Below, piece after piece: positions 498 through 20,928 of a stretch of 29,837 nucleotides of DNA. The stretch lies in NCBI GenBank assembly GCA_013416795.1, contig RQSC01000030.1, positions 355,884 to 385,720 of the forward strand, in the 5' to 3' direction. Origin of the DNA: Prasinococcaceae sp. CCMP 1430 (taxonomy: Eukaryota; Plantae; Prasinodermophyta). The notes under the pieces are model-generated. The model ran no database searches. It was not told the DNA's origin and saw only the letters and a program-made list of their open reading frames with translations. The first letter of the stretch is position 1. Each line of letters begins with the position of its first letter. The position numbers were made by a program, and so were the translations under genes.

Positions 498-1602
498 TCA
501 CAGGAGCGCGAGCCACGGAGCAGCGGCGGCGAGCGGCACGAGCAGGTTGTCGTTGCTGGTGGCGACGAGCTCGACTACGGAGGCTGCGACGGCAGCGACC
601 ACCGAGCGCGGCCGCAGCAGCGCACCCTGCGCGAGCGGCGCGGCGAGTGAGCGCGTCAGCAGCGCGCCGTGGGCACGCGCCGCGCCGCGTGATGCGGAAG
701 AAGGCGCGCGCGCGGCACGTCAGCCAGCCATGGGCAGCGCTCACCTGTGCGAGGTACGTCGCCACGAAGCATGCGGTCGCACCCTCCAGCGACTTGCCGT
801 TGGGCAGCCGTGGCGACGCCCTTCCGCCCAGCCGGCTCCCGAGGGCCGCCGCCGCTGTGTCGCCCACGCCGAGCGCCGCGAGCGCGGCGATCGAAGCCTC
901 CTGAGGCCAGTCCGGCCCGACGAGCCACAGCGTGCAGCCGATGCCGAGCGCGAGGGTGAGGTGCGACGTGACCAGCGCGCCGGCGTCGCGCTCGTCCCGC
1001 AGCGGGGCAGTCAGCGCCTCGAACAGCCTCGCCAGCGGCGCAGGCCAACCGCGCAGACGCACGCCCTCGCACACGCACAGCAGCGCCACGACGCCTGCAG
1101 ACGCCAGGGACACGAGCCGCCGCCCAGCCAATGACCGCAGCAACGGCGCGAGCGCGAAGAACGCGAGCACGTGGTAGCCCTTGCGCACGGCGATGCGCGG
1201 CGCCCAGCCTCGTGCGGCGGCCGCCGTCAGGGCCGTCGCCGCTGCTACCCCCGCGACGGCGATCGCTGCGAGATGCGTCGCGAACGGCTCGACGACGGCG
1301 CGCAGGTGCGCGTATGGCGCCGTGTACAGCGCGACGGCCGCGAGCGCGAGGGCGTACGGGGGGCGCCCGCGCGCAGCGAGCGTGAGCGCGGCCGCTGAGC
1401 CCGTCGCAGCAGCGCGCAGCGCGCGCGCATCCGGGTCTCGCCAGCTGTCGCGGTCGATGGCGTCGGTTGCTATCGCGGCCATGGTGGCGCCCAGCAGCGC
1501 CACCTCGCCAGCTGCGAGGCTCGACGGGAACGCCAGCGCGACGCGCGACGCGGCGACGGCGCCCGCGTAGCCGCTTGCAATCGCGACGATGGCTGACCGC
1601 AT
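498..1602 (-). CDS. Dolichol kinase-like polytopic membrane protein (CTP_transf_1 type); exons 745-1602(+) and 498-626; start uncertain
   Basis: Motifs FPSSLAAGE, RKGYH, DERDAGALVTSHLTLALG, GVGDTAAAALGSRLG, GKSLEG and, after the intron, ELVATSNDNLLVPL*. Intron 627-744 has CAG|GTGAGC, a gctgac branch point and a gcgcag acceptor, phase 0, and restores the conserved C-terminus. Confidence 0.85.
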
Positions 1603-2065
1603 CGATCCGCTGTCCCACGCCACCGCCAGAAGTGCAAGCGTGGCCACGGCCCTGCCCACCCCCCCGCTAATCGCGCGGCCGTTGATCACGATGCTGCCCG
1701 CGCCGCCTCTGCGTGGCGCCCACGCCGCCGCCGCCAGCGCCGGAGCGAGCGCGGGGCTGTCGGCGAGCAGCGCGGCCGTGGGCAGCGCGAGCGCTCCCAG
1801 CGTGGCGGAGCCCGGCGGCGACCCCGGCGCCGCCGATGCCGCAGGGCCCCCGCGCGTCGATCGGCTGCTGGCGGACGGGCGCGCTGAGTCAGCGCGGGCG
1901 CCACTGGGCGCGCGGCGGACGTGGGAGAGGCGGGAGAGGCGGGGGAGGCGGGGGGGTCGGGGAGTGAGTGGGGTGAGGGGCGTTGTGAGGGCAGAAGGGG
2001 TGGAGGCCGTGGGCGGCCGGGGTGGACAGAAGGGGCCGGCGGCAACTGCCGCCGCCGCTCCCGCG

Positions 2066-3889
2066 ATGGCGGCCGCCGCGGCTCCTCGGCGAGCGCTCGC
2101 GCTCTTCCTGCTCGGGCAGGAGCTGTACGACTGCGGCGACGGCTGCGGCGCGGAGGCAGCGCTCTGCGCGTGCGCGCGCGCGTGCGGCGGCGCGATCGAT
2201 GGCATCGTAGGCGAGGACGAGATCGAAGGCGAGGGCGAGGGGGAGGGGGAGGGAGAGGAGGGCGGCGCGCCTGTCATCCCGCGCGAGTATGTCCTGTCGG
2301 CGGCGCTCGACGCGCTCGGCAATGTCCACATGGACCGCGCGTCATCCGCCGGCTTTCCGCTGTCGGCCTCGGCCGACGCAGCGGCGCATGCGCTGGCGGC
2401 GGAGAGTGCGTATGAGGCGGCGGTGCGCGCGTGGCCTCGTCAGGCGCAGGCGGCGCTGTCCCTCGCGCTGCTACGCAGGGACGCGGGGCGCCGCGAGGAA
2501 GCCATACGAACGTGGGCAGGCGTGCTCGCGCTTCAGGGGGAGGACGCGATCGCAGACGCCGAGCTCGCAGAGGAGTGGGGCAGCGCGGCCGCGGCCGTGC
2601 CTTTCGCGCGTGCGGAGAGGTGCGTGGCCGCGGCGGCCGCGGGCAAGATTGACATCGCCGACGCGGACGCCGCGGCGCTCGGGTACACGCGCCGGCTCTC
2701 CAAGGCCCTGTGGTGTGAGGCGGACGGGTGTGGGCCGGACAGGAGGCGCGTGTGCGCCGCTGCCGACGCCGACGCCAGCGCGCCGGCGGTCTTCCACGAT
2801 GCGGTGCCGCGCGCGGCGGCCGCGCAGCTGCGCGCGGCGTTCGCGCCGGATGCGCCGTACTGGCATGAGACGGGCTACGCGCGCGCGTCTTCGGAGCGCG
2901 CCTACTTTACGTTCGGCGTGGGCGACCTGCCCGCTCTCGTCGCCGGCGAGCGCGCCCCCGCGGATGCCGTAGAGGCGCTCATCAGGCGGCTGGCGCCGCT
3001 CGCGCAGGCCTACCTCGATGCGCGGCGCGCGCCGGCGCGATGCGCGGGTGCGTCCGGTGCGGGCGGCCAGCAGCTCTGCGAATGCGAGTGGTGGATACAC
3101 GCGCGTCCCAGCGGCGGCCGCTCCCCCGGACACCAGCTGCACTTCGACACTGAGGAGCGGACCATGGAGCTCAGCGGTGGGCGCAGCGTGGTCCACCCTG
3201 CGGTGAGCTCTGTCGTCTACCTCTCGGGCGGCGACGGGTCGGTCGACGCACCCGGGGATCCCACGGTCGTGCTGGACCAGACGCTCGGCGGCGCACCAGC
3301 GCGACGCGCGTGGGTGGTGCATCCGCGGGCGCGCTCCTTCATGGTCTTCGATGGCGATCGACTGCATGGCGTTTTGCCCGGCGGCAGGCGGGGCGGCGGC
3401 GGCGAGCCGTACGAAAGCGGCCCCGATGTCCTGAACAGCGGCCTACCCGCTGCGCAGCGCCTCACGCTGCTCATCGCGTGGTACGCCGAAGGCCAGCCGC
3501 TGCTACGAGAGGCGAGCGGTAGCAAGCGGGCGCGCGCGCTCACGGCACGCGGATCCATTCCCCGCCCCACGCGCGGCCGCACGTGGCCGCGCGCGCTCCA
3601 GCTCGAGGCAGACGATGCGCCGAGCGCGCAGGCGGAGGAGGCCGAGCCGGCGGAGTGGCGTCCACCGGCGATATCGCCCGCCTGGGAGGACGTGCGCCCC
3701 GCCGGCGGGCCCTCGCGCGTGGCGGGCGCGGCGGCAGACAGCGCCCGCGTGCCCGCGGATGACCTTGAGGAGGCCTACAAGACCCACTTCTTCCTGGTGC
3801 GCGAAGACGACGTGGAGCGCCGCTTGTGGGAGGAGCACGGCGAGGACGGCACGTACACGCGAGCGAGCGAGAAGCGACGGCGCGCGTGA
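2066..3889 (+). CDS. TPR-like N-terminus plus 2OG-Fe(II) oxygenase-like domain protein
   Basis: Likely ATG 2066 within ORF 1589-3889. TPR-like AESAYEAAVRAWPRQAQAALSLALLRRDAGRREEAIRTW. CEWWIH...HQLHFD (HxD at 3140-3148), SSVVYL, FDGDRLHGV (distal His), RLTLLIAW (candidate 2OG-binding Arg). Confidence 0.7.
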   Translation: MAAAAAPRRALALFLLGQELYDCGDGCGAEAALCACARACGGAIDGIVGEDEIEGEGEGEGEGEEGGAPVIPREYVLSAALDALGNVHMDRASSAGFPLSASADAAAHALAAESAYEAAVRAWPRQAQAALSLALLRRDAGRREEAIRTWAGVLALQGEDAIADAELAEEWGSAAAAVPFARAERCVAAAAAGKIDIADADAAALGYTRRLSKALWCEADGCGPDRRRVCAAADADASAPAVFHDAVPRAAAAQLRAAFAPDAPYWHETGYARASSERAYFTFGVGDLPALVAGERAPADAVEALIRRLAPLAQAYLDARRAPARCAGASGAGGQQLCECEWWIHARPSGGRSPGHQLHFDTEERTMELSGGRSVVHPAVSSVVYLSGGDGSVDAPGDPTVVLDQTLGGAPARRAWVVHPRARSFMVFDGDRLHGVLPGGRRGGGGEPYESGPDVLNSGLPAAQRLTLLIAWYAEGQPLLREASGSKRARALTARGSIPRPTRGRTWPRALQLEADDAPSAQAEEAEPAEWRPPAISPAWEDVRPAGGPSRVAGAAADSARVPADDLEEAYKTHFFLVREDDVERRLWEEHGEDGTYTRASEKRRRA

Positions 3890-4073
3890 TCTCTCGCGGC
3901 GCGCGCGTCTCAGCTGGCGCGCGGTCGGTGTAGAAGTCACTAATTATTCTTCCTCTTCGTGCGATGCGCGGTGCGCTGTGCGCGTGTGCAGTAGCCTGGG
4001 GATGCAGGGAGGGGGGGGGGGTAGGGGGGGCGCTGCGCTACGCCACGGACGGGTGCGGCCTTCATCAAGTGCC

Positions 4074-5900
4074 TCAGTCGCCACCCTTCGCCGCGCCGGC
4101 GGGCGGCTGCACCGCGACCGCAAACGAGGCTTCGCCGCCGTCGCCGCCGCTCTCAGTCGCGTTGCTGTCGGCCGCACCTCCCTCGCCCCCAGCGGCGGTG
4201 CCGCTCGCGTTGCCAGCAACGCTGGGCGTGCTCGCGCTGAGTATCATGTCGTTCAGCATGAGGACGTCATCCGCCGTGACCTCGCCGTCCGCGTTGATGT
4301 CGTGTCTCAACAGGTCGCAGCGCGAGAACGCGGTCGGATCGTCCACCCAGTCGATGCTCGTCATGAACCCGAGCAGCTCCGCGAGGTCGCTCTGGTCGAG
4401 CGCCCCGCTCCCGTCCAGGTCGCCCGGTGCGCCGGCCGATGCGCCGCAGCACTGCGCCGCGGTGAGCTCGGTAAGCCTCTCAGGGTCGTAGAACTCGGCG
4501 TAGGTGCAGTGGCCCTCGACGCTCGCGCAGCCGCGCATCGGATTGTAGCAACGCGCGCGGGGGAACATCGGGCAATCTGCGTACGCGCTCACCAGCTCTC
4601 CGCCCCTCTCGAGCTCGATGGTGTTGGCGCATGGGTTGGCCTCGTCTTCCGCCGCTCCGCAGGTGGCGGCCACCGACTCGAGCATGAGCGTGAAAATGCC
4701 CGCGGGTGACGCCGACGACGCGGCGCCCTCCGCCGCCGTGGCCGAGGCGTTGGCGTCCGCGCCCGCGACCACCGGGCAGCGGCAGGGACACGCGGCGTTG
4801 CAACGAATGGGCTCGCCCATGCATACGGCCTGACACGGCGACGTGGTGTGGTTGCTGATGCTGCAGTACGAGTTGCCGAGCGCGGCCGCGCCTGCGTCCT
4901 CCTCGGCGCACTCCGCAGCGCACGCGGCCCTGCGCGTGCTGTCGTCGACCTCGTCGTCGTCGAGGCCAATCTCCCCCCCGCTTGCGTCGCCGTCCTGGTC
5001 GCCCTCGTCTTTCCCGGGTGTGGGCTGCGGGGCGCTGGCGGCGTCGAGCGGCTCACACGTGCCCTTGCAGCCGCCGGGGCACACCTCCGCGCCTCCGTGC
5101 GGGTTGCTGTGGTTGCAAAAGGCCACCGTGGGCTGGCAGGCGAGCTCGCGGCTCAGGAACTCGTCCCAGCCGCATGCGCCACCGATGGGCACGTATGACG
5201 AGCCCGAGCCGGAGGGGGTGGTGCTGCTGTTGGCGGCAGAGTCGTTTTGGGGGAATGCCGCGCCAGCCACGGCCGTCATCCCGGGCTCTGCCGCGACGTC
5301 GCTCTCGCCACTTCCCTCGCCGCTGCTGCCACGCTCTGGCGGTGCGACGCAGGTGCCAGGGCACCCGCCAGCGCACATGAACCCCGCCGGCTGCGACAGC
5401 GTGAAGTCGCACGCGAGCCCCGGCGCGCACACCATCGCGCCCTCCTCGCACGCCTCGCGGTGGCCACAGGCGCCGCCCTCTCGCACGTACTCGGCGCAAC
5501 GGCGCACCAGGCCTCCGTCGCAGCTCTGCACTTCCTGGCAGAAGAACGCTTCGCGGCCGGTCACGTCGCCCCTCTTGGCGGCGGGAGCGAGGATTGCCGC
5601 GCAGTCCGCGTCCGTGTCGCACGGGTGGCTTCCCGCCGACGCGAAATGCTCTCGCACGCGCGAGACGAGTGCGGCGTGCACGTGCGCGTGGTGTGGCGTT
5701 TCGGCCTCGTCGTTGTCCACCTCGTGCTTGCCCACGGCGCGCGGTGCGCCCGCGGCCACCGCGGCGGGGCCATGAGCGGCGCAGAGCACGCCCGCCAGGG
5801 CACACGCGAGCAGTGCCGCTGCACTCCCCGTATCACGAGCACGGGCGGCCACGCGGGGGCGGCCTGGCGCGGCCGCGCCTCGCCGCCGGCAGACCCCCAT
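4074..5900 (-). CDS. Secreted Cys-rich protein: two Cys-rich repeats, Kazal-like module, further Cys module, C-terminal dockerin-like domain
   Basis: ATG 5900 followed by hydrophobic AAALLACALAGVLCAAHG. Repeats YVxxGGACG...CxGGCxGTC (5349-5489, 5055-5195). Kazal-like CSISNHTTSPCQAVCMGEPIRCNAACPC. GDLDGSGALDQSD...DINADGEVTADD at 4239-4424. Stop TGA 4074-4076. Confidence 0.8.
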   Translation of the reverse strand: MGVCRRRGAAAPGRPRVAARARDTGSAAALLACALAGVLCAAHGPAAVAAGAPRAVGKHEVDNDEAETPHHAHVHAALVSRVREHFASAGSHPCDTDADCAAILAPAAKRGDVTGREAFFCQEVQSCDGGLVRRCAEYVREGGACGHREACEEGAMVCAPGLACDFTLSQPAGFMCAGGCPGTCVAPPERGSSGEGSGESDVAAEPGMTAVAGAAFPQNDSAANSSTTPSGSGSSYVPIGGACGWDEFLSRELACQPTVAFCNHSNPHGGAEVCPGGCKGTCEPLDAASAPQPTPGKDEGDQDGDASGGEIGLDDDEVDDSTRRAACAAECAEEDAGAAALGNSYCSISNHTTSPCQAVCMGEPIRCNAACPCRCPVVAGADANASATAAEGAASSASPAGIFTLMLESVAATCGAAEDEANPCANTIELERGGELVSAYADCPMFPRARCYNPMRGCASVEGHCTYAEFYDPERLTELTAAQCCGASAGAPGDLDGSGALDQSDLAELLGFMTSIDWVDDPTAFSRCDLLRHDINADGEVTADDVLMLNDMILSASTPSVAGNASGTAAGGEGGAADSNATESGGDGGEASFAVAVQPPAGAAKGGD

Positions 5901-7211
5901 CGTGCTGGCCTTGCTTCCTCGCCTGCGCGGCAGTGTGTGCTCCGCGGCAACCAAGCGCCTGCGAGCGCACGCCGACCGCGAGAACGAGCGGCCCGTGCCG
6001 CGACTGCACCCGCTCGCCCGCCACCGGGCGGCCAGCGACCGTCGGCGCACGCCCCCTCGCCCTTGTTGCCCTTATGCTGTCCCAGTCCCCCCCGCGGCGC
6101 ACGCGCGCAGCGCCGGCGCTGTGGTGCGGCCGCGCCCGTGACGCCGCCGCGCGCCGGGGGCCGCCGCCGCGCACACGCCCGCGCTCGTCAACGCGCCCTT
6201 TCGACCCCCGCCCAACTCAGCGCAGAAGCGCTGCGGTTCGCGTTGACATCGCCGGAATGCGCATTAAAATCATATTGGCATGCGTATTGCAGTAAACCTC
6301 GATACTGAGATTTCGAGCTCGCATTCGCATGCACGCTGCTCCGGACGAATTCGGATGTGCGGTCGCAACGGCGCGCATCCGCGCAAGTCGCATCAGACGA
6401 CGACTCCCACGTCGGGCTGACCTCGCGGGGCCTCAGGCCCGCGGGGGGTGGGAGCTGGAGGCAGCGAGGGGGGCAGGCGGCAGGGCTTCCTACCACGGGG
6501 CGGCTTCCGCTGCACTCGAGGCCGTTGTAAGGAACCCGTGGCAGGGCTTTGGCAGAGGGTTTGCGTGCCCGCGCCAAGGGAGGGGGGCCTGGGCCTCGCG
6601 TGGCGTGCCCGCGCGGGGCGCCGTGAGGGGAAGGGGGCAAGGGCGAGGGAAGGGTGCGCAAAGGGAGGGTTTGCGGCGCTGCCTGCTCGAGTTGACTCCG
6701 AATGCCGCGGTTGACTTCCCCGCCAGGGTGGCTCACTCCCCCAGCTGGCAGCTGGCCCCAATGTGCCGTGCTATGCGCACGTTCAATCAACTGTAAAAAA
6801 CGCTTCATACGGTTGCTTGCATCCGTGCCCTCAGTGAGCGCACATTCGGTGCATCGCAACTTTCCAACTTCGCAAGGAAAGTAATGACTTCGCGAAAATG
6901 AAGGCGGGTTCGGTCGGGGGAGGCCCGCGAGCGATCGCGCGGGAGTGCTTTCAATGCCATCTCCCATCCACGTGTCGGGTCCCCCCGTGGCGGCCCCGTC
7001 CGTTACGTCTCGGCGGGAGTGCGGTTTGTCAACGCCCTCCGCCGCTGCCACGCGTGCTTAGCGCCGTGTCCTCACGCACTGGCGTTGGGCTTATCCATAC
7101 CCAACCCAACCCAACAGGTCTCGCACGCGCATCGTCGCGGCGCGCCGGATTTGGCAGCGCGCGCGCCGCGCACGCCCACCGCCGCCGCGCGCGACGTTGA
7201 CTGCGGGGGCG

Positions 7212-7248
7212 NNNNNNNNNNNNNNNNNNNNNNNNNNNNNNNNNNNNN
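7212..7248. other. Assembly gap (37 N)
   Basis: Run of n in the sequence. Confidence 0.99.
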
Positions 7249-7378
7249 GGAGGGGGCGCAGCGCGCGCGCGCGGCGGCGGAGGCGGGAGAGGCAGCGGAG
7301 GGGGGTCGCGACGGCAGGTGGTCGACACACGCGAGACGCGGGCTCATCCGGCGGCGAGCTGCTGCTCGCGGTGGTGGG

Positions 7379-9742
7379 ATGATGCCCTGCGCCGATCGGC
7401 GCCTCGGTCGCGCGGTGACCGCGTGCGCGTGCTCGCTGGCGGCGCTCCTGGCGGTGTCGGCGCTGGCCTCGCGTGGGGTGAGCGCGCAACCGCTCCCCGC
7501 GGGCAACGGCATACAGGCGGTCATCGACACGCAGTGCGGGTCCCTCGCTTTGGGCGACCACAGCTTGGTCTTCTGCAACGGCAAGGAATACGCCGAGGAG
7601 CACGGCCTGGACGCGCAGACGCTCTCGGTGGCCACGCTCAGCACCGCAGGGGACGAGTCCGAGATCGGCGGCGAGATGATCGTCACCGCCCCCGACGGCC
7701 CCACGGCCGAGGAGATGTGCCTGTGGTGCAACCAGGGGCGCGACGATGGCTCCAACCCGACGTCGCACTACCGCCCGACCTGTCGCGACGTCGTGTCGGG
7801 CGATGCGTTCAACGGCGTCGTGATGTGGGTGGACAACAAGCGCCAGCTGTCGTACTTCGCGTCGGTCTTCGGATCGGATATGTCCTACCTGGAGATGAGC
7901 GTGGCGGTGGCCACCGCGCAGGTCTCCGAGGAGGCTGTGCCGCCCGGCTACGTCGTCTCGCCCGTCGGCGCCGACGCGGTGGGGGTCGATCGCGCAGACC
8001 AGCGCGCGGCCGAGCTCGACGGCCAAGTCACCAGCCCAGCCCACGGGGGCGCCGGCGTGGTCATCTTCAACATCGACACGGGCATTGACTGCAGCCATCC
8101 CGAGTTCCTCAACGCCGACGGGACCGCGACGCGCTGCACGCCCGCGTTCGATCGCTTCGCGAACGCCGAGTGCATCAACAACGGCGGTAGCCAGCCGTGC
8201 ACCAGCGCGCTCGAGTACGCGTGCGCGCAGGACGGCGGCGGCGCACAGCAGTGCGCGTTCGACGAGCACAGCCAGGGCCACGGCACGCACACGGCGGCCA
8301 TCGCGGTCGGCCGCACCTTCGGGATGGCCCGCGACGCCGACGTGCGCGCGGTCAAGGTCTTCGACGGCCCCGAGGGCTTCGGCACGCCCCAGGACGTGCT
8401 CACCGGCATGAACTACGTGGCCCAGATGAAGCTGCTCGACCCGACGAAGCCGATGATCGCCGCGATGAGCCTGAGTGGCACCAAGTCGCTCGCGATGGAG
8501 ATGGCCATCGAGCGGCTCGCTCTGTACGGGGTGACGGTGGTTGTGGCTGCCGGCAACAACTTTCAGGCGGACGCCTGCAATTTCTCGCCGTCGTCCTCGC
8601 CGGCGGGCATCACGGTGTCGTCCATCGACGCGTTCACAGATGGCGTGAGCGGCTTCGCGAACGTGGGCCCCTGCGTGGACCTCTTCGCCGTCGGCTCCGT
8701 CGTTGCGTCCGCGCAGCCCGGCGGCGGCACCACGACCCAGTCCGGCACGTCGATGGCCGCGCCCGTCGTCGCGGGCATCGCGGCGCTGTACTACGGCGAG
8801 TTCGTGGCCGCAGGCGCGCCCATCCCCGACCCGGCGCAGGTGAAGGCCGACCTCGTATTGGCGGCCACCGACGGCGCCATCCCCGACCCGCTGGGCTCTC
8901 CCAACAAGATCGCGTACGCCGTCTTCCCGAACACGGGCGTCTCCCTGCCACCGAGCTCCGCCGGTGGGGGCGAGCCACCCGCGCCCACGCCACAGCCCAC
9001 CGCACAGCCACAGCCCGAGCCCACCGCGCCTCCGACGGCGGACGAGTCCTACCCCTGCACGTCACTCGACTGCAACGACAGCACGCCGCACCCGTGGACG
9101 AAAAGCTCGGATGGCAGCATGCAATTCTGCTACTGCGACAACGCCTGCTTCGCGAACCAGGACTGCTGCGGAAACAGGTTGTCCATCTGCGGCCCCGAGG
9201 TCCAAGAGACGACCGGCAGCGAAGTGCCTGCGCTCGGGACGTGCGCGACGCTGCAGGATTGCGGCAAAATATTGACAAAGGAAGGCGGCGAGCAGTGCGG
9301 ATGCGACGCGGCCTGTGTCCACTACAACGACTGCTGCGAGGGCTTCGAGGCGACGTGCGTGGCGGACGCGCCGCCGCCGTCGTGCCAGGCCGTCGGATGC
9401 GACGCGGGCAAGCAGACCTACGGGGCGGGCGGCGGTCTGGAGTGCTACTGCAGCCCGGACTGTGTGCAATACCACGATTGTTGCTCAGGGGAGACCGGGA
9501 CGAACGGGTACAACCAAGTGTGCAGTGGGTGGGGTCAGGAGAGCGTCGGCTCCGCCGGGGTCGACGGCGACCGCGTGGCCGCCGCCGTGTCTCGCGGCGA
9601 CGACTCGGCCTTCGATGCTCAGCCGGAAACAGCGGAGGACGATGACGGCGGCGGCTTCACCTTCGGCTCGCAATACGTGCAGCATCACGAAGTCGACGAC
9701 GACGCCGTCCTGTCCGGCCTCTCAGGCAAGGCCTATCCATGA
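7379..9742 (+). CDS. Secreted subtilisin-like serine protease (S8A, proteinase K-like) with Pro-rich linker and three somatomedin-B-like repeats
   Basis: Signal-like CSLAALLAVSALASRGVSA; I9-like propeptide AFNGVVMW...SYLE; GVDRADQR; triad IDTG (D 8075), HGTHTA (H 8279), GTSMAAP (S 8750); oxyanion AAGN. C-terminal CxC(D/S)xxCxxxxDCC three times at 9056-9523. Confidence 0.93.
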   Translation: MMPCADRRLGRAVTACACSLAALLAVSALASRGVSAQPLPAGNGIQAVIDTQCGSLALGDHSLVFCNGKEYAEEHGLDAQTLSVATLSTAGDESEIGGEMIVTAPDGPTAEEMCLWCNQGRDDGSNPTSHYRPTCRDVVSGDAFNGVVMWVDNKRQLSYFASVFGSDMSYLEMSVAVATAQVSEEAVPPGYVVSPVGADAVGVDRADQRAAELDGQVTSPAHGGAGVVIFNIDTGIDCSHPEFLNADGTATRCTPAFDRFANAECINNGGSQPCTSALEYACAQDGGGAQQCAFDEHSQGHGTHTAAIAVGRTFGMARDADVRAVKVFDGPEGFGTPQDVLTGMNYVAQMKLLDPTKPMIAAMSLSGTKSLAMEMAIERLALYGVTVVVAAGNNFQADACNFSPSSSPAGITVSSIDAFTDGVSGFANVGPCVDLFAVGSVVASAQPGGGTTTQSGTSMAAPVVAGIAALYYGEFVAAGAPIPDPAQVKADLVLAATDGAIPDPLGSPNKIAYAVFPNTGVSLPPSSAGGGEPPAPTPQPTAQPQPEPTAPPTADESYPCTSLDCNDSTPHPWTKSSDGSMQFCYCDNACFANQDCCGNRLSICGPEVQETTGSEVPALGTCATLQDCGKILTKEGGEQCGCDAACVHYNDCCEGFEATCVADAPPPSCQAVGCDAGKQTYGAGGGLECYCSPDCVQYHDCCSGETGTNGYNQVCSGWGQESVGSAGVDGDRVAAAVSRGDDSAFDAQPETAEDDDGGGFTFGSQYVQHHEVDDDAVLSGLSGKAYP

Positions 9743-15256: not shown

Positions 15257-16346
<1,090 letters not shown>

Positions 16347-16347
16347 N

Positions 16348-16870
16348 ATCCAGCATAGTCTGCATAGGCGTCTGAAAGTTCAAGAAGAAAGTCCAACCAG
16401 GTTCCAATCCCCACACCAAGACCAAAAAGAAAAAGACCAACACAGAGAATATACTGGGTTTTCCAAAAGTCTGGACTAAACTGGTAGGGAGTATTGAGGT
16501 ACCAGTCCTCCATAAGAGAGTCGACCAGTGGGTGAATACAATGGTAGACACAAAGGGTCCAGAGAAGGAAAACAAAGAAAGTCCCGCATACAAGACTCCC
16601 TTGGGTTGAAAGATCAAAGGAAGAAGAAAGGGTTTGAAGACTTGTACTCTCTCGAAGACTTTCCAACCCAAAAAGAAGAGGGTTCAAAGAGGATTGAAGA
16701 ACATTCGGAAGGGTCGCCCATCCAGTACTGAGAAAAAGAGGTGCCAATCCACCGTAAAGAAAGGGAAGAAGAAGAATCACTCCCGAAATACGCATGGAAA
16801 TTGAAAGAACAGACCCACGTTGGGGACTGTACACAGTAAGGTGAGGAGACAAAGGTCGTTGAAGCTTCAT
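16348..16870 (-). CDS. sdh3: Mitochondrial-type succinate dehydrogenase cytochrome b subunit (SdhC), 174 codons, no stop before the N
   Basis: MKLQRPLSPHLTVY...SISMRISG matches the SdhC RPLSPHLxxY / SIxHRISG signature. Three hydrophobic segments, with His in TM2 (VYHCIH). Confidence 0.85.
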
Positions 16871-19417: not shown

Positions 19418-20028
19418 NNNNNNNNNNNNNNNNNNNNNNNNNNNNNNNNNNNNNNNNNNNNNNNNNNNNNNNNNNNNNNNNNNNNNNNNNNNNNNNNNNN
19501 NNNNNNNNNNNNNNNNNNNNNNNNNNNNNNNNNNNNNNNNNNNNNNNNNNNNNNNNNNNNNNNNNNNNNNNNNNNNNNNNNNNNNNNNNNNNNNNNNNNN
19601 NNNNNNNNNNNNNNNNNNNNNNNNNNNNNNNNNNNNNNNNNNNNNNNNNNNNNNNNNNNNNNNNNNNNNNNNNNNNNNNNNNNNNNNNNNNNNNNNNNNN
19701 NNNNNNNNNNNNNNNNNNNNNNNNNNNNNNNNNNNNNNNNNNNNNNNNNNNNNNNNNNNNNNNNNNNNNNNNNNNNNNNNNNNNNNNNNNNNNNNNNNNN
19801 NNNNNNNNNNNNNNNNNNNNNNNNNNNNNNNNNNNNNNNNNNNNNNNNNNNNNNNNNNNNNNNNNNNNNNNNNNNNNNNNNNNNNNNNNNNNNNNNNNNN
19901 NNNNNNNNNNNNNNNNNNNNNNNNNNNNNNNNNNNNNNNNNNNNNNNNNNNNNNNNNNNNNNNNNNNNNNNNNNNNNNNNNNNNNNNNNNNNNNNNNNNN
20001 NNNNNNNNNNNNNNNNNNNNNNNNNNNN
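19418..20028. other. Assembly gap (611 N)
   Basis: Run of n; it hides the MAPKK stop and the start of the next gene. Confidence 0.99.
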
Positions 20029-20928
20029 GGCGCCGGAGGGCGGGGGGTCGCCGTGTGTGCCGCGCCGGCGGCCGCGGCACCGGCCGCGGCCGTCGCCTCC
20101 AAGAGCCTGCGCACGTGCCCGCAGCTGGCGGCGTCCGCGCAGTGCTTCGGCTTCGGGGCGTGCGCGGCGTGGGCGTCCATGCACGTCGGGACGCCCGCGC
20201 ACGCCCTCGTGACGGCGCTGTACGGGGCGTGCGGGCGGGTGCTGCCGACGGCACTGCTGCGCTTCCTCTTCGACACCGCCTCGGAGGGCGTGACCACCGC
20301 GCCCATCGAGGCCGGGTGCTGCGGCTACGCCGACTTTCGCTTGTTCTCGCTGCTGCTCGTGATGGTGTCGAGCATGTGCTACCACTGCACGGGCATCGCG
20401 GCGCTGCGATGGGTGGACGTCACGTCGGTGTGCACGCTCGTGGGCGCCCACGGCGCCTTCCTGGTGGAGATGAGCGCCGCGGCGGAGAGGAGTGCCACGT
20501 TCGTCGGGGCGCACGAGTACGAGTCGCTGCGTGCCACCCTGGGTGACGATGTCTTCGGCCTCCCGCCCGCGACCGCGCTGCTGGTGGCCATCTACATCCT
20601 CTGCATAGCCATCTACGCACTGAACCTGGCCAGCATGCTGTCGGACAGAGCTCTGCACGGGCTGGGCTGGCCGGCGGTGGCGATCGTTGTCGCCATCAAA
20701 ACGCGCCTTGGCCAGCCGATCGCGGGGCTCGGGCTTCTCCTCACCGCCATGGGAGCGGGCTCCTTCCGGAGCTCGCTCAGCGCCATGCACCGCGACGCTG
20801 CCCGCGGCGCAACGTGCAAGTCGTGGGACGAGGTCCTCTACCACATGGGCCTGCACATCTTCGAAAGCGCGGCGATTGTGTGCCTGTACGCCAACGAGGC
20901 GCACCTCAACATGCACCTCGGATCGTGA
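20029..20928 (+). CDS. Polytopic membrane protein with CREST-superfamily motifs (ceramidase/PAQR/Per1/TMEM8-like), 5' end in gap
   Basis: SSMCYH (SxxxH, 20371-20385), LRWVDVTS (conserved Asp), HMGLH (HxxxH, 20842-20856), about seven hydrophobic segments, stop TGA 20926-20928. Confidence 0.7.
   Translation, partial: GAGGRGVAVCAAPAAAAPAAAVASKSLRTCPQLAASAQCFGFGACAAWASMHVGTPAHALVTALYGACGRVLPTALLRFLFDTASEGVTTAPIEAGCCGYADFRLFSLLLVMVSSMCYHCTGIAALRWVDVTSVCTLVGAHGAFLVEMSAAAERSATFVGAHEYESLRATLGDDVFGLPPATALLVAIYILCIAIYALNLASMLSDRALHGLGWPAVAIVVAIKTRLGQPIAGLGLLLTAMGAGSFRSSLSAMHRDAARGATCKSWDEVLYHMGLHIFESAAIVCLYANEAHLNMHLGS

Follow-up and report, generated by a model that had tools for sequence, protein, structure and literature searches.

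A dockerin-fold module, borderline by sequence, in a probably secreted cysteine-rich orphan protein of a eukaryotic alga

The locus and its coding status

The window, by which the whole 29.8-kb stretch of DNA that was analysed is meant, has a GC content of ~72% and carries on its minus strand an intronless gene for a 608-aa protein with a calcium-loop module near the C-terminus. The drop in GC at 19-20 kb stems from a run of N at an assembly gap and is not a biological feature. The features discussed are listed below, with the basis of each call in brackets.

4074..5900, minus strand: intronless coding sequence, 608 aa plus stop, with the stop codon at 4074-4076 and the ATG at 5898-5900 (ORF and translation)
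5757..5900, minus strand: Arg-rich N-terminus and hydrophobic stretch (aa 24-48), probable signal peptide (Kyte-Doolittle)
5349..5621, minus strand: Cys-rich block A, aa 94-184, 12 Cys, the second half being copy 1 of a 6-Cys module (Cys positions; no Pfam match)
5055..5174, minus strand: Cys-rich block B with 6 Cys (aa 243-282), the second copy of the 6-Cys module (internal duplication; no Pfam match)
4776..4922, minus strand: Cys-rich block C, aa 327-375, 9 Cys (Cys positions; no Pfam match)
4446..4661, minus strand: Cys-rich block D, aa 414-485, with 8 Cys and a terminal Cys-Cys 9-10 residues ahead of loop 1 (Cys positions; no Pfam match)
4233..4427, minus strand: dockerin-fold module, aa 492-556 (Pfam PF00404, AlphaFold, Foldseek, VIA, Atlas)
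4386-4421, minus strand: loop 1, aa 494-505 (translation)
4317-4319, minus strand: Cys528, inside the short helix (translation)
4266-4301, minus strand: loop 2, aa 534-545 (translation)
within the module, minus strand: predicted helix 1, aa 503-518; short helix, aa 527-533; helix 3, aa 543-557 (AlphaFold)
4077..4232, minus strand: C-terminal tail, aa 557-608, low-complexity Gly/Ala/Ser/acidic, containing two N-x-S/T sequons and lacking a membrane anchor (translation, hydropathy)
7019..9742, plus strand: secreted subtilase (Peptidase_S8) with C-terminal somatomedin-B-like (SMB) Cys modules (PF00082, 96 bits; PF01033, 37.9 bits)

The 608-aa gene is expressed and intronless. A 2069-nt contig from a transcriptome-sized 2015 run spans 4082-6140 and is colinear with the locus without a difference or joint, marine metatranscriptome contigs from two datasets span 3966-5015, including the dockerin-fold module, and further metatranscriptome contigs cover 5356-5798 and 5577-6056, all without joints and with sharp ends of the transcript contigs over this gene. 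The copy in another strain, called in two Logan assemblies, is 98% identical and encodes a 606-aa product; the two copies are distinguished by 10 synonymous and 8 non-synonymous codon differences and one in-frame 2-codon indel, with synonymous change per site in excess over non-synonymous change. GC at codon positions 1/2/3 of the ORF amounts to 0.70/0.61/0.86, and this GC3 signature, the in-frame indel, the synonymous excess and the transcript contigs together identify the ORF as genuine coding sequence.

Given that long spurious ORFs are common in GC-rich DNA and that the Pfam Dockerin_1 score of the module is borderline, it could be argued that no real feature exists and that a stretch rich in Asp/Gly by chance within a spurious ORF, or bacterial contamination, accounts for the observations. 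Such an explanation is highly improbable when set against the coding signature, the differences to the other strain's copy, the sharp-ended transcript contigs and a strict loop motif that occurs twice in one frame and never in shuffled sequence. Contamination is contradicted by the neighbouring genes, as the window also encodes APC4, a Vps4-like AAA ATPase and a protein kinase, which mark the contig as eukaryotic and share the composition of the 608-aa gene. A spurious ORF and a contaminant were hence both rejected on the basis of transcripts, eukaryotic neighbours and coding signature, and the same three neighbouring genes agree with the eukaryotic host presumed in the earlier note.

Protein organization outside the module

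The N-terminus probably constitutes a signal peptide, and from hydropathy its cleavage and the secretion of the protein would be expected. The Kyte-Doolittle maximum over 19 residues is 1.92 at aa 24-42, which is the sole strongly hydrophobic segment, and the last 80 aa reach 0.85 at most, so that hydropathy reveals no membrane anchor at the C-terminus. Beyond the leader, the protein contains 36 further Cys and seven N-glycosylation sequons. Two of the Cys-rich blocks are related by internal duplication, since aa 136-192 and aa 235-290 align with a score of 82 as compared to 30 +/- 6 for shuffled sequences, none of 500 of which scored as high.

A word-index search with the whole protein returned the 98%-identical copy of the other strain and nothing else, and an exhaustive HMMER search of 1.84 billion representatives added to this copy only one protein with EF-hand repeats, whose match is the sum of six weak repeats. 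Both protein searches returned no relative of the Cys-rich part beyond the other strain's copy, and this part is hence without a family. As judged by sequence comparison, the rest of the protein is thus an orphan, confined to this algal lineage among the 1.84 billion representatives. An AlphaFold model of aa 85-490 has a pLDDT of 33 and is unusable for the fold of the Cys-rich region, and the values for this region in the ESM Atlas (features <=0.80, shape TM <=0.37) are at chance level, so that the neighbours named there, Dickkopf, an IGFBP/Kazal-bearing HtrA and Myxococcota hypothetical proteins, serve as leads only. A Kazal-type inhibitor domain was considered and found no support, as neither Kazal_1 nor Kazal_2 nor any other Pfam model matched the whole protein or the four Cys blocks singly at E up to 10, and the Kazal Cys spacing pattern used is unmatched in the Cys-rich part.

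The two Asp-rich loops

The duplicated calcium-loop-plus-helix peptide, which the earlier note had placed at 4239-4424, is present on the minus strand and corresponds to aa 493-554. It consists of two 12-residue Asp-rich loops, each followed by a hydrophobic, helix-forming stretch, with the loop starts 40 residues apart. Loop 1, preceded by Pro-Gly, has D1, D3, S5, G6, D9 and D12, and loop 2 has D1, N3, D5, G6, T9 and D12. The F-hand arrangement of a 12-residue loop and a helix, repeated twice, is therefore found with conservative departures at two positions at which dockerins usually have Asp/Asn, namely position 5 of loop 1 (S5) and position 9 of loop 2 (T9). A strict pattern covering the loop and the first helix residue detects just these two sites across the six frames of the window, and no site in 200 block-wise shuffles.

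Position 11 of loop 1 is subject to an S/N polymorphism, observed in the other strain and in one marine metatranscriptome; the equivalent position in clostridial dockerins serves in cohesin recognition. A Cys 9-10 residues ahead of loop 1 and one ahead of loop 2, corresponding to Cys528, are common to the two nearest modules, and the upstream Cys and Cys528 may form a disulfide clamp.

Dockerin fold versus EF-hand pair

The earlier note had read the peptide as an F-hand dockerin rather than a paired EF-hand and had proposed profile scoring against both kinds of model. Pfam Dockerin_1 (PF00404; gathering threshold 22.9 bits) scores 26.0 bits (E 1e-5) on an isolated 87-aa piece, and falls below the cut-off on full chains, with 21.5 bits on the whole 608-aa ORF and 19.3 bits on the protein of the other strain. 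In all cases, the alignment extends over profile positions 1-57 of 57, corresponding to aa 492-554 of the ORF. The EF-hand models, with thresholds of 25-30 bits, all remain under threshold (EF-hand_6 17.0, EF-hand_1 15.1, EF-hand_5 13.8 and EF-hand_7 12.6 bits), and the Pfam model for the SPARC calcium-binding domain does not match the module. As a control, a genuine EF-hand pair (aa 55-135 of the IQ/EF-hand repeat protein) scored 52-54 bits on EF-hand models, with 52 on EF-hand_7, and gave no Dockerin_1 match at E up to 1. With Dockerin_1 at 26.0/21.5 bits against 12.6-17 bits, the module does not score better as an EF-hand pair, and it is a dockerin-fold module that is borderline by sequence.

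The predicted structure points in the same direction. An AlphaFold2 model of aa 476-561 (pLDDT 81, pTM 0.72), possibly biased by the inclusion of two bona fide bacterial dockerins in its input alignment, places one helix behind each of the two loops, another ahead of loop 2 and none elsewhere, and the Gly/Ala/Pro stretch before loop 1 has no predicted helix, suggesting that an entering helix is lacking there. The dockerin fold, with no entering helix, helices 1 and 3 packed and a short middle helix, is thus recovered in the predicted model, while the four helices of an EF-hand pair are found neither in this model nor among the best fold matches. In the Foldseek comparison with the PDB, dockerins fill ranks 1-25 without exception (TM by target 0.57-0.77, and 0.31-0.37 for two longer chains), followed by EF-hand proteins with a TM of about 0.25 and an rmsd of 9-13 A. 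Likewise, the exhaustive VIA search of 48,161 chains placed dockerins at ranks 1-12 with Z from 7.7 to 4.4, the best being 2vn5_B (Z 7.7, rmsd 1.9 A over 56 aa), with unrelated entries from Z 4.3 down and EF-hand proteins absent from the top 50. In the ESM Atlas, Dockerin_1 clusters account for 21 of the 30 nearest by language-model features; the Atlas's own alignment-free model of the module finds the same neighbours as the AlphaFold model, and the structural neighbours of both are nearly all dockerin-bearing bacterial proteins.

The competing description is that of an extracellular EF-hand pair, comparable to a SPARC-type EC domain following Cys-rich modules, that would sense or buffer calcium or change conformation without any docking. 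EF-hand pairs (EhCaBP1, 1jfj/2m7n; the IQ/EF-hand repeat protein; the SPARC EC domain) do share 12-residue DxDxDG-type loops with similar spacing, the generic EF-hand loop pattern fits both algal loops, the 40-residue distance is near that of EF-hand pairs and the predicted short helix at aa 527-533 could serve as the entering helix for loop 2. Moreover, when PDB sequences were searched pairwise, EhCaBP1 came out on top (E 5e-4 over its whole chain, with 17.5 bits in the best stretch and 23.6 bits in sum), slightly ahead of the best dockerin (19.3 bits, best stretch 14.7), and the IQ/EF-hand repeat protein retrieved by the exhaustive search has 28% identity per repeat to the module. However, EhCaBP1 is aligned over its EF-loops 2 to 3 and hence across two lobes, not along one true pair, and the repeat protein owes its score to summation. 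The profile scores, the fold searches, the predicted absence of an entering helix before loop 1 and the presence of Asp rather than Glu at position 12 of both loops also speak against it, and an EF-hand pair is accordingly an improbable description. The F-hand pair of a dockerin is supported as the better one by sequence profiles and the predicted model, in agreement with the first reading.

Comparison with clostridial and fungal dockerins

Like the algal module, the clostridial type I dockerins of C. cellulolyticum (2vn5/2vn6) and C. thermocellum Xyn10B (1ohz/2ccl) consist of two F-hands in tandem, whose loops have Asp/Asn at positions 1, 3 and 5/9 and Asp at position 12. Loop 1 is likewise without an entering helix, the three helices form a small arrangement, and the location is near the C-terminus of a secreted modular protein. 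In contrast, identity to them is only 25-27%, the algal host is eukaryotic and the cargo is an orphan Cys-rich protein instead of a glycoside hydrolase. Further differences are a distance between loop starts that exceeds the one in the Xyn10B dockerin by about 7 residues in the pairwise alignment, the Cys-Cys before loop 1 and the Cys before loop 2, and the 52-aa low-complexity tail that follows. The designation type I, as used in the earlier note, holds as the name of the Pfam family and of the structures that match best, whereas for a module so distant the class itself is unassignable.

The halves of the module have no detectable mutual similarity beyond the loop pattern, and hence there is no sign of a symmetric dual-binding design and a single binding orientation would be likelier than the dual mode known from clostridial type I dockerins. 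Anaerobic fungi provide a eukaryotic docking module on secreted proteins, namely their cellulosome dockerins, whose fold, small and rich in Cys, is unrelated and has no F-hand calcium loops.

Relatives and origin of the module

The closest bacterial module found belongs to a protein from a Myxococcales MAG, with 42% identity over 60 residues, which passes the Pfam thresholds for both Cohesin and Dockerin_1 in one chain, unlike the algal protein. A search restricted to the module region, looking for paralogous dockerin proteins, returned only the other strain's copy and one metagenomic protein, a weak match with 36-38% identity, in which the module is N-terminal, again different from the algal protein. 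Pattern scans yielded one confirmed locus in bacterial/archaeal genomes and one in metagenomes, a number too small for a domain tree, which a module of 60 residues would not support either. In the Atlas, the clusters nearest to the module belong to Fidelibacterota, Bacteroidota, Planctomycetota and Bacillota. Like the algal module, these environmental bacterial dockerin-like modules have one Cys ahead of loop 1 and a second immediately ahead of loop 2, they adjoin Cys-rich modules and their cargo is very diverse and not cellulolytic; they differ in being bacterial or without known origin, and none has the rest of the algal protein.

A derivation by horizontal transfer, as had been suggested, is not shown: the GC3 and codon composition of the gene are native, the remainder of the protein is an orphan, and 42% identity over 60 residues is too little to name a donor or a direction of transfer.

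Possible function

The reading that we favour, with a probability of roughly 0.55, is that of a secreted disulfide-rich protein with a dockerin-fold module, by which it would be held calcium-dependently on a partner at the surface or wall. According to this proposal, the protein would be secreted, probably N-glycosylated and disulfide-rich; the module would comprise two calcium-binding F-hands packed as a small helical bundle near the C-terminus; and this bundle would hold the protein calcium-dependently on a partner located in the wall or at the surface of the cell. We infer secretion, calcium binding and tethering, the last being the most likely role of the module because the protein itself lacks a membrane anchor.

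A more specific version is put forward tentatively, since it seems rather doubtful at present: the protein may belong to the cargo of a cohesin-dockerin plug-in system in a eukaryote, by which a deep-branching green picoalga, probably a Prasinoderma, would hang secreted proteins calcium-dependently on membrane-anchored cohesin-fold scaffolds to build or decorate its wall. If so, the S/N polymorphism in loop 1 would represent natural variation in the cohesin interface.

Conversely, the module could be a calcium module of dockerin fold that does not bind a cohesin, acting as a calcium-stabilised structural cap or binding something else in the wall or matrix, for instance a glycan or another class of protein. 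The fold evidence from Pfam, AlphaFold, Foldseek and VIA is equally compatible with such a role, the dockerin-like tails in the nearest Atlas phyla (Fidelibacterota, Bacteroidota and Planctomycetota) are borne on cargo of great diversity, the Pfam scan found no cohesin in the window, and the tail that follows the module means that it is not the end of the protein. For many of the dockerin-like modules that marine bacteria carry outside cellulosomes, roles of this kind are suspected, and a cohesin partner is not known for many of the non-cellulosomal dockerins of bacteria. Such a role is nonetheless less likely than docking, with the closest bacterial relative residing in a protein that also has a Pfam-level cohesin, and with the algal protein having no other visible means of retention.

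Calcium-dependent tethering would be of interest because cohesin-dockerin pairing is a bacterial and archaeal means of assembling extracellular protein machines. In eukaryotes, the literature points to scattered cohesin-like domains, in choanoflagellates, sponges and TMEM132. The literature searched on green algae, phytoplankton and prasinophytes yielded no description of a green-algal dockerin, and according to a study of the cellulases of green algae, these enzymes lack dockerins. The genome paper on Prasinoderma coloniale describes the components of the thick cell wall as unknown and the usual polysaccharide pathways as missing, and mentions neither cohesin nor dockerin; the GC content published there is 69.8%, as compared to ~72% in the window. 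If the present alga is a Prasinoderma and if its dockerin-tagged proteins dock on cohesin-fold scaffolds, the question of wall composition would become directly testable, and an example of the cohesin-dockerin assembly principle in a photosynthetic eukaryote would be at hand. By itself, the gene adds one expressed, well-delimited dockerin module together with its orphan cargo.

The adjacent subtilase gene

The gene transcribed divergently from the 608-aa gene is described as context only, with no functional link implied. A protease-inhibitor pairing between the two products was discarded, as adjacency alone joins the genes; the subtilase and its SMB modules are themselves real. A search with these modules for SMB-bearing paralogues matched only the orthologue of the subtilase, which is 99% identical and 787 aa long. 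Besides the listed SMB match, a further weak one was obtained, and the translation contains three similar Cys modules, with a run of N near the 5' end of the ORF.

Architecture and expression of the dockerin gene

The dockerin gene lies in a window whose GC content is 0.65-0.77 across most of its length, and comprises the following features (window positions where a strand is given, otherwise residues of the protein).

4074-6050, minus strand: open frame of 658 codons containing the dockerin gene
N-terminus: Arg-rich, then aa 24-48, the sole strongly hydrophobic stretch of the protein
aa 94-184, 243-282, 327-375 and 414-485: four Cys-rich blocks (A to D) with Gly/Ser/Ala/acidic linkers between them; 36 Cys beyond the leader
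aa 492-556 (4233-4427, minus strand): probable dockerin-fold module
aa 494-505 (4386-4421, minus strand): loop 1, with D, D, S, G, D, D at positions 1, 3, 5, 6, 9, 12
aa 534-545 (4266-4301, minus strand): loop 2, with D, N, D, G, T, D at positions 1, 3, 5, 6, 9, 12
C-terminal tail: 52 residues of low complexity, without a membrane anchor

The likely start codon is the ATG at 5900, giving a protein of 608 residues with seven N-x-S/T sequons. Self-alignment revealed that block B and the second half of block A represent an internally duplicated 6-Cys module (score 82 as compared to 30 +/- 6 for shuffles, 0 of 500 of which reach it). Pfam assigns no family to the Cys-rich part, scanned whole or block by block, and no relatives of this 80% of the protein are detectable in an exhaustive search among 1.84 billion representatives. 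AlphaFold yields no usable model for it (pLDDT 33), and its Atlas neighbours provide leads at chance level only. Designation of these blocks as Kazal-like inhibitor is supported by neither Pfam scans nor the Cys-spacing pattern.

The dockerin gene is real. Its GC content at codon positions 1/2/3 is 0.70/0.61/0.86, and in another strain a 98%-identical product of 606 residues is called on two Logan contigs, with 10 synonymous and 8 non-synonymous codon differences, one in-frame two-codon indel and retention of all Cys. A 2069-nt contig from a transcriptome-sized 2015 run covers 4082-6140 with zero differences and zero joints, and its depth of 481, as compared to about 5 for pieces of the same run on the neighbouring gene, argues for RNA and not DNA as its source, with the caveat that contig depth cannot rank genes. 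Colinear contigs are also present over 3966-5015, 5356-5798 and 5577-6056 in two runs recorded as marine metatranscriptomes. Such unbroken transcript contigs from culture and sea indicate a gene without introns that is transcribed in both settings. Genes for APC4, a protein kinase and a Vps4-like AAA ATPase on the same contig identify it as nuclear DNA of a eukaryote rather than bacterial contamination, and we consider it highly improbable that the module is an artefact.

The two calcium loops

A strict loop pattern, searched in the six frames of the window, matches at these two sites only and has 0 matches in 200 block-wise shuffles, which confirms both the duplicated Ca loop plus helix described by the earlier note and its location. 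Each loop is directly followed by a hydrophobic helix-forming stretch, and Gly/Ala/Pro residues are located ahead of loop 1. The loop starts are 40 residues apart, whereas in the Xyn10B dockerin of C. thermocellum the spacing is about seven residues shorter by pairwise alignment. The two halves show no detectable similarity beyond the loop pattern (z 0.8), which would argue against a symmetric design with dual binding as in clostridial type I dockerins. A Cys-Cys pair is situated 9-10 residues ahead of loop 1 and Cys528 six residues ahead of loop 2; the two nearest modules likewise place a Cys ahead of each loop, close to it in the case of loop 2, and a putative disulfide clamp formed by the Cys near the two loops is plausible. 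Residue 11 of loop 1 (codon 504), Ser in this sequence, is replaced by Asn in the other strain and in a contig of one marine metatranscriptome; in marine metatranscriptome run X16, a C>T change at 4390, read on the plus strand, converts Ser504 to Asn. Loop positions 10-11 of clostridial dockerins contact cohesin.

Dockerin versus EF-hand pair

Using the isolated 87-residue piece, all 57 positions of the Pfam Dockerin_1 profile are aligned with 26.0 bits (E 1e-5), while the whole ORF scores 21.5 bits against a cut-off of 22.9. Four Pfam EF-hand models give 12.6-17.0 bits on the module against cut-offs of 25-30, and a control, the true EF-hand pair at residues 55-135 of P0003 (an IQ/EF-hand repeat protein), gives 52-54 bits with EF-hand models and no Dockerin_1 match. 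Pairwise sequence comparison is ambiguous: the EF-hand protein EhCaBP1 ranks first in a PDB sequence search (23.6 bits summed, best stretch 17.5), with the Xyn10B dockerin behind it (19.3 bits, best stretch 14.7). However, the EhCaBP1 alignment spans EF-loop 2 to EF-loop 3, i.e. across two lobes, and hence reflects loop similarity and not pair architecture. Likewise, P0003, the sole non-self match of the exhaustive search of 1.84 billion representatives, surfaced only because weak loop similarity accumulates over its repeats, six of which, at 28% identity each, together give its 54.7 bits. P0003 (1228 residues) is a chain of six or more nearly identical units, in each of which two IQ-like motifs accompany a canonical EF-hand pair.

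Predicted structure gives a clear answer in favour of dockerin. The AlphaFold2 model of aa 476-561 (pLDDT 81, pTM 0.72), built from a five-sequence alignment that held two real bacterial dockerins and may have biased it, contains helices at aa 503-518, 527-533 and 543-557 and no entering helix ahead of loop 1. Using Foldseek against the PDB, the first 25 ranks are dockerins (E 0.08-1.3; TM by target 0.57-0.77, and 0.31-0.37 for two longer chains), followed by EF-hand proteins with TM of about 0.25 and rmsd of 9-13 A. VIA-align, which is independent of Foldseek, placed dockerins at the first 12 ranks among 48,161 representative chains, the best match being the C. cellulolyticum dockerin chain 2vn5_B (Z 7.7, rmsd 1.9 A, all 56 of its residues), with unrelated rows starting at Z 4.3. 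Structural neighbours of the alignment-free ESM Atlas model (aa 480-562) are nearly all dockerin-bearing bacterial proteins, Dockerin_1 accounts for 21 of the 30 clusters closest in language-model features, and the AlphaFold2 model searched against the Atlas had the same outcome. The module is, with good confidence, an F-hand module of dockerin fold that shares ancestry with bacterial dockerins and is borderline by sequence statistics; its earlier assignment to dockerins rather than paired EF-hands is upheld by profile scores and fold alike, and an EF-hand-pair-like module is unlikely.

Bacterial relatives and horizontal transfer

The closest sequences found are a protein from a Myxococcales MAG (42% identity over 60 residues), which scores above Pfam threshold with the Cohesin model (28.5 bits) as well as with Dockerin_1 (33.5 bits), and the metagenomic protein P0002 (36-38% identity; Dockerin_1 26-30 bits), and hence the module is likely to have bacterial affinities. 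For the HGT-derived module proposed earlier, a recent transfer is not supported, given the native codon composition of the gene and the orphan remainder of the protein. Ancient acquisition and module shuffling cannot be distinguished, 60 residues being too short for phylogeny. In the Myxococcales protein (1071 residues; contig CAZJHX010000132.1, 13-3225, plus strand), the Pfam cohesin occupies aa 561-668, and the chain further contains Cys-rich DUF7107 repeats and another dockerin-like stretch in addition to its C-terminal dockerin. Of the modules found, this C-terminal dockerin comes nearest to that of the alga, with similarly placed Cys.

Proposed role and partner

From its leader, many Cys and sequons, the protein would be secreted and disulfide-bonded, and the module may bind two Ca2+ and hold this anchor-less protein on a surface partner. 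We assign a probability of about 0.55 to tethering through a dockerin module, with cohesin-fold proteins as the most likely partners. A role other than cohesin binding for the dockerin fold is less probable. Pfam scans of the window revealed no cohesin, and protein-index searches reached no paralogues of the dockerin protein. Dockerin-like modules outside cellulosomes are established in all three domains of life (Peer et al. 2009, as cited). Among eukaryotes, cohesin-like domains are on record in choanoflagellates, sponges and TMEM132, and no dockerin partner is known in vertebrates.

No description of a dockerin in a green alga was found in literature searches pairing dockerin with algal or phytoplankton terms, and a study of green-algal cellulases reports dockerins as absent from these enzymes. 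The Prasinoderma coloniale genome paper gives a GC content of 69.8%, states that wall composition is unknown and mentions neither cohesin nor dockerin. The module itself belongs to a known kind, and the interesting part is the system-level reading, a candidate cohesin-dockerin system.

Neighbouring features

7019-9742, plus strand: secreted subtilase (Peptidase_S8 96 bits), divergent in orientation to the dockerin gene
19418-20029: assembly gap of 612 N directly after a kinase-coding stretch
15257-16870, minus strand: open frame with Sdh_cyt (35 bits), AAA (132 bits) and Vps4_C (39 bits)
1589-3889, plus strand: ORF of 766 codons, convergent with the dockerin gene, without Pfam match

Adjacency is the only link between the dockerin gene and the subtilase, whose C-terminus carries three somatomedin-B-like Cys modules behind a Pro-rich linker. 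A short N run at about 7208-7246 breaks the upstream part of its ORF; the likely start is a Met-Met ahead of a hydrophobic leader, and a 99%-identical orthologue of 787 residues (P0004) is present in Logan assemblies. The 612-base N run accounts for an apparent GC dip to 0.32 and for stop-free ORFs in several frames, and its position renders gene models spanning the gap unreliable. Being GC-rich and poor in stops, the 15257-16870 frame probably runs through two separate genes or exons; its Sdh_cyt match covers 44 residues from the N-terminus of the succinate dehydrogenase cytochrome b subunit. Where the 1589-3889 ORF would match, the Logan contig of the other strain has a gene call of 662 residues, and the transcriptome-like run contributes low-depth pieces only.
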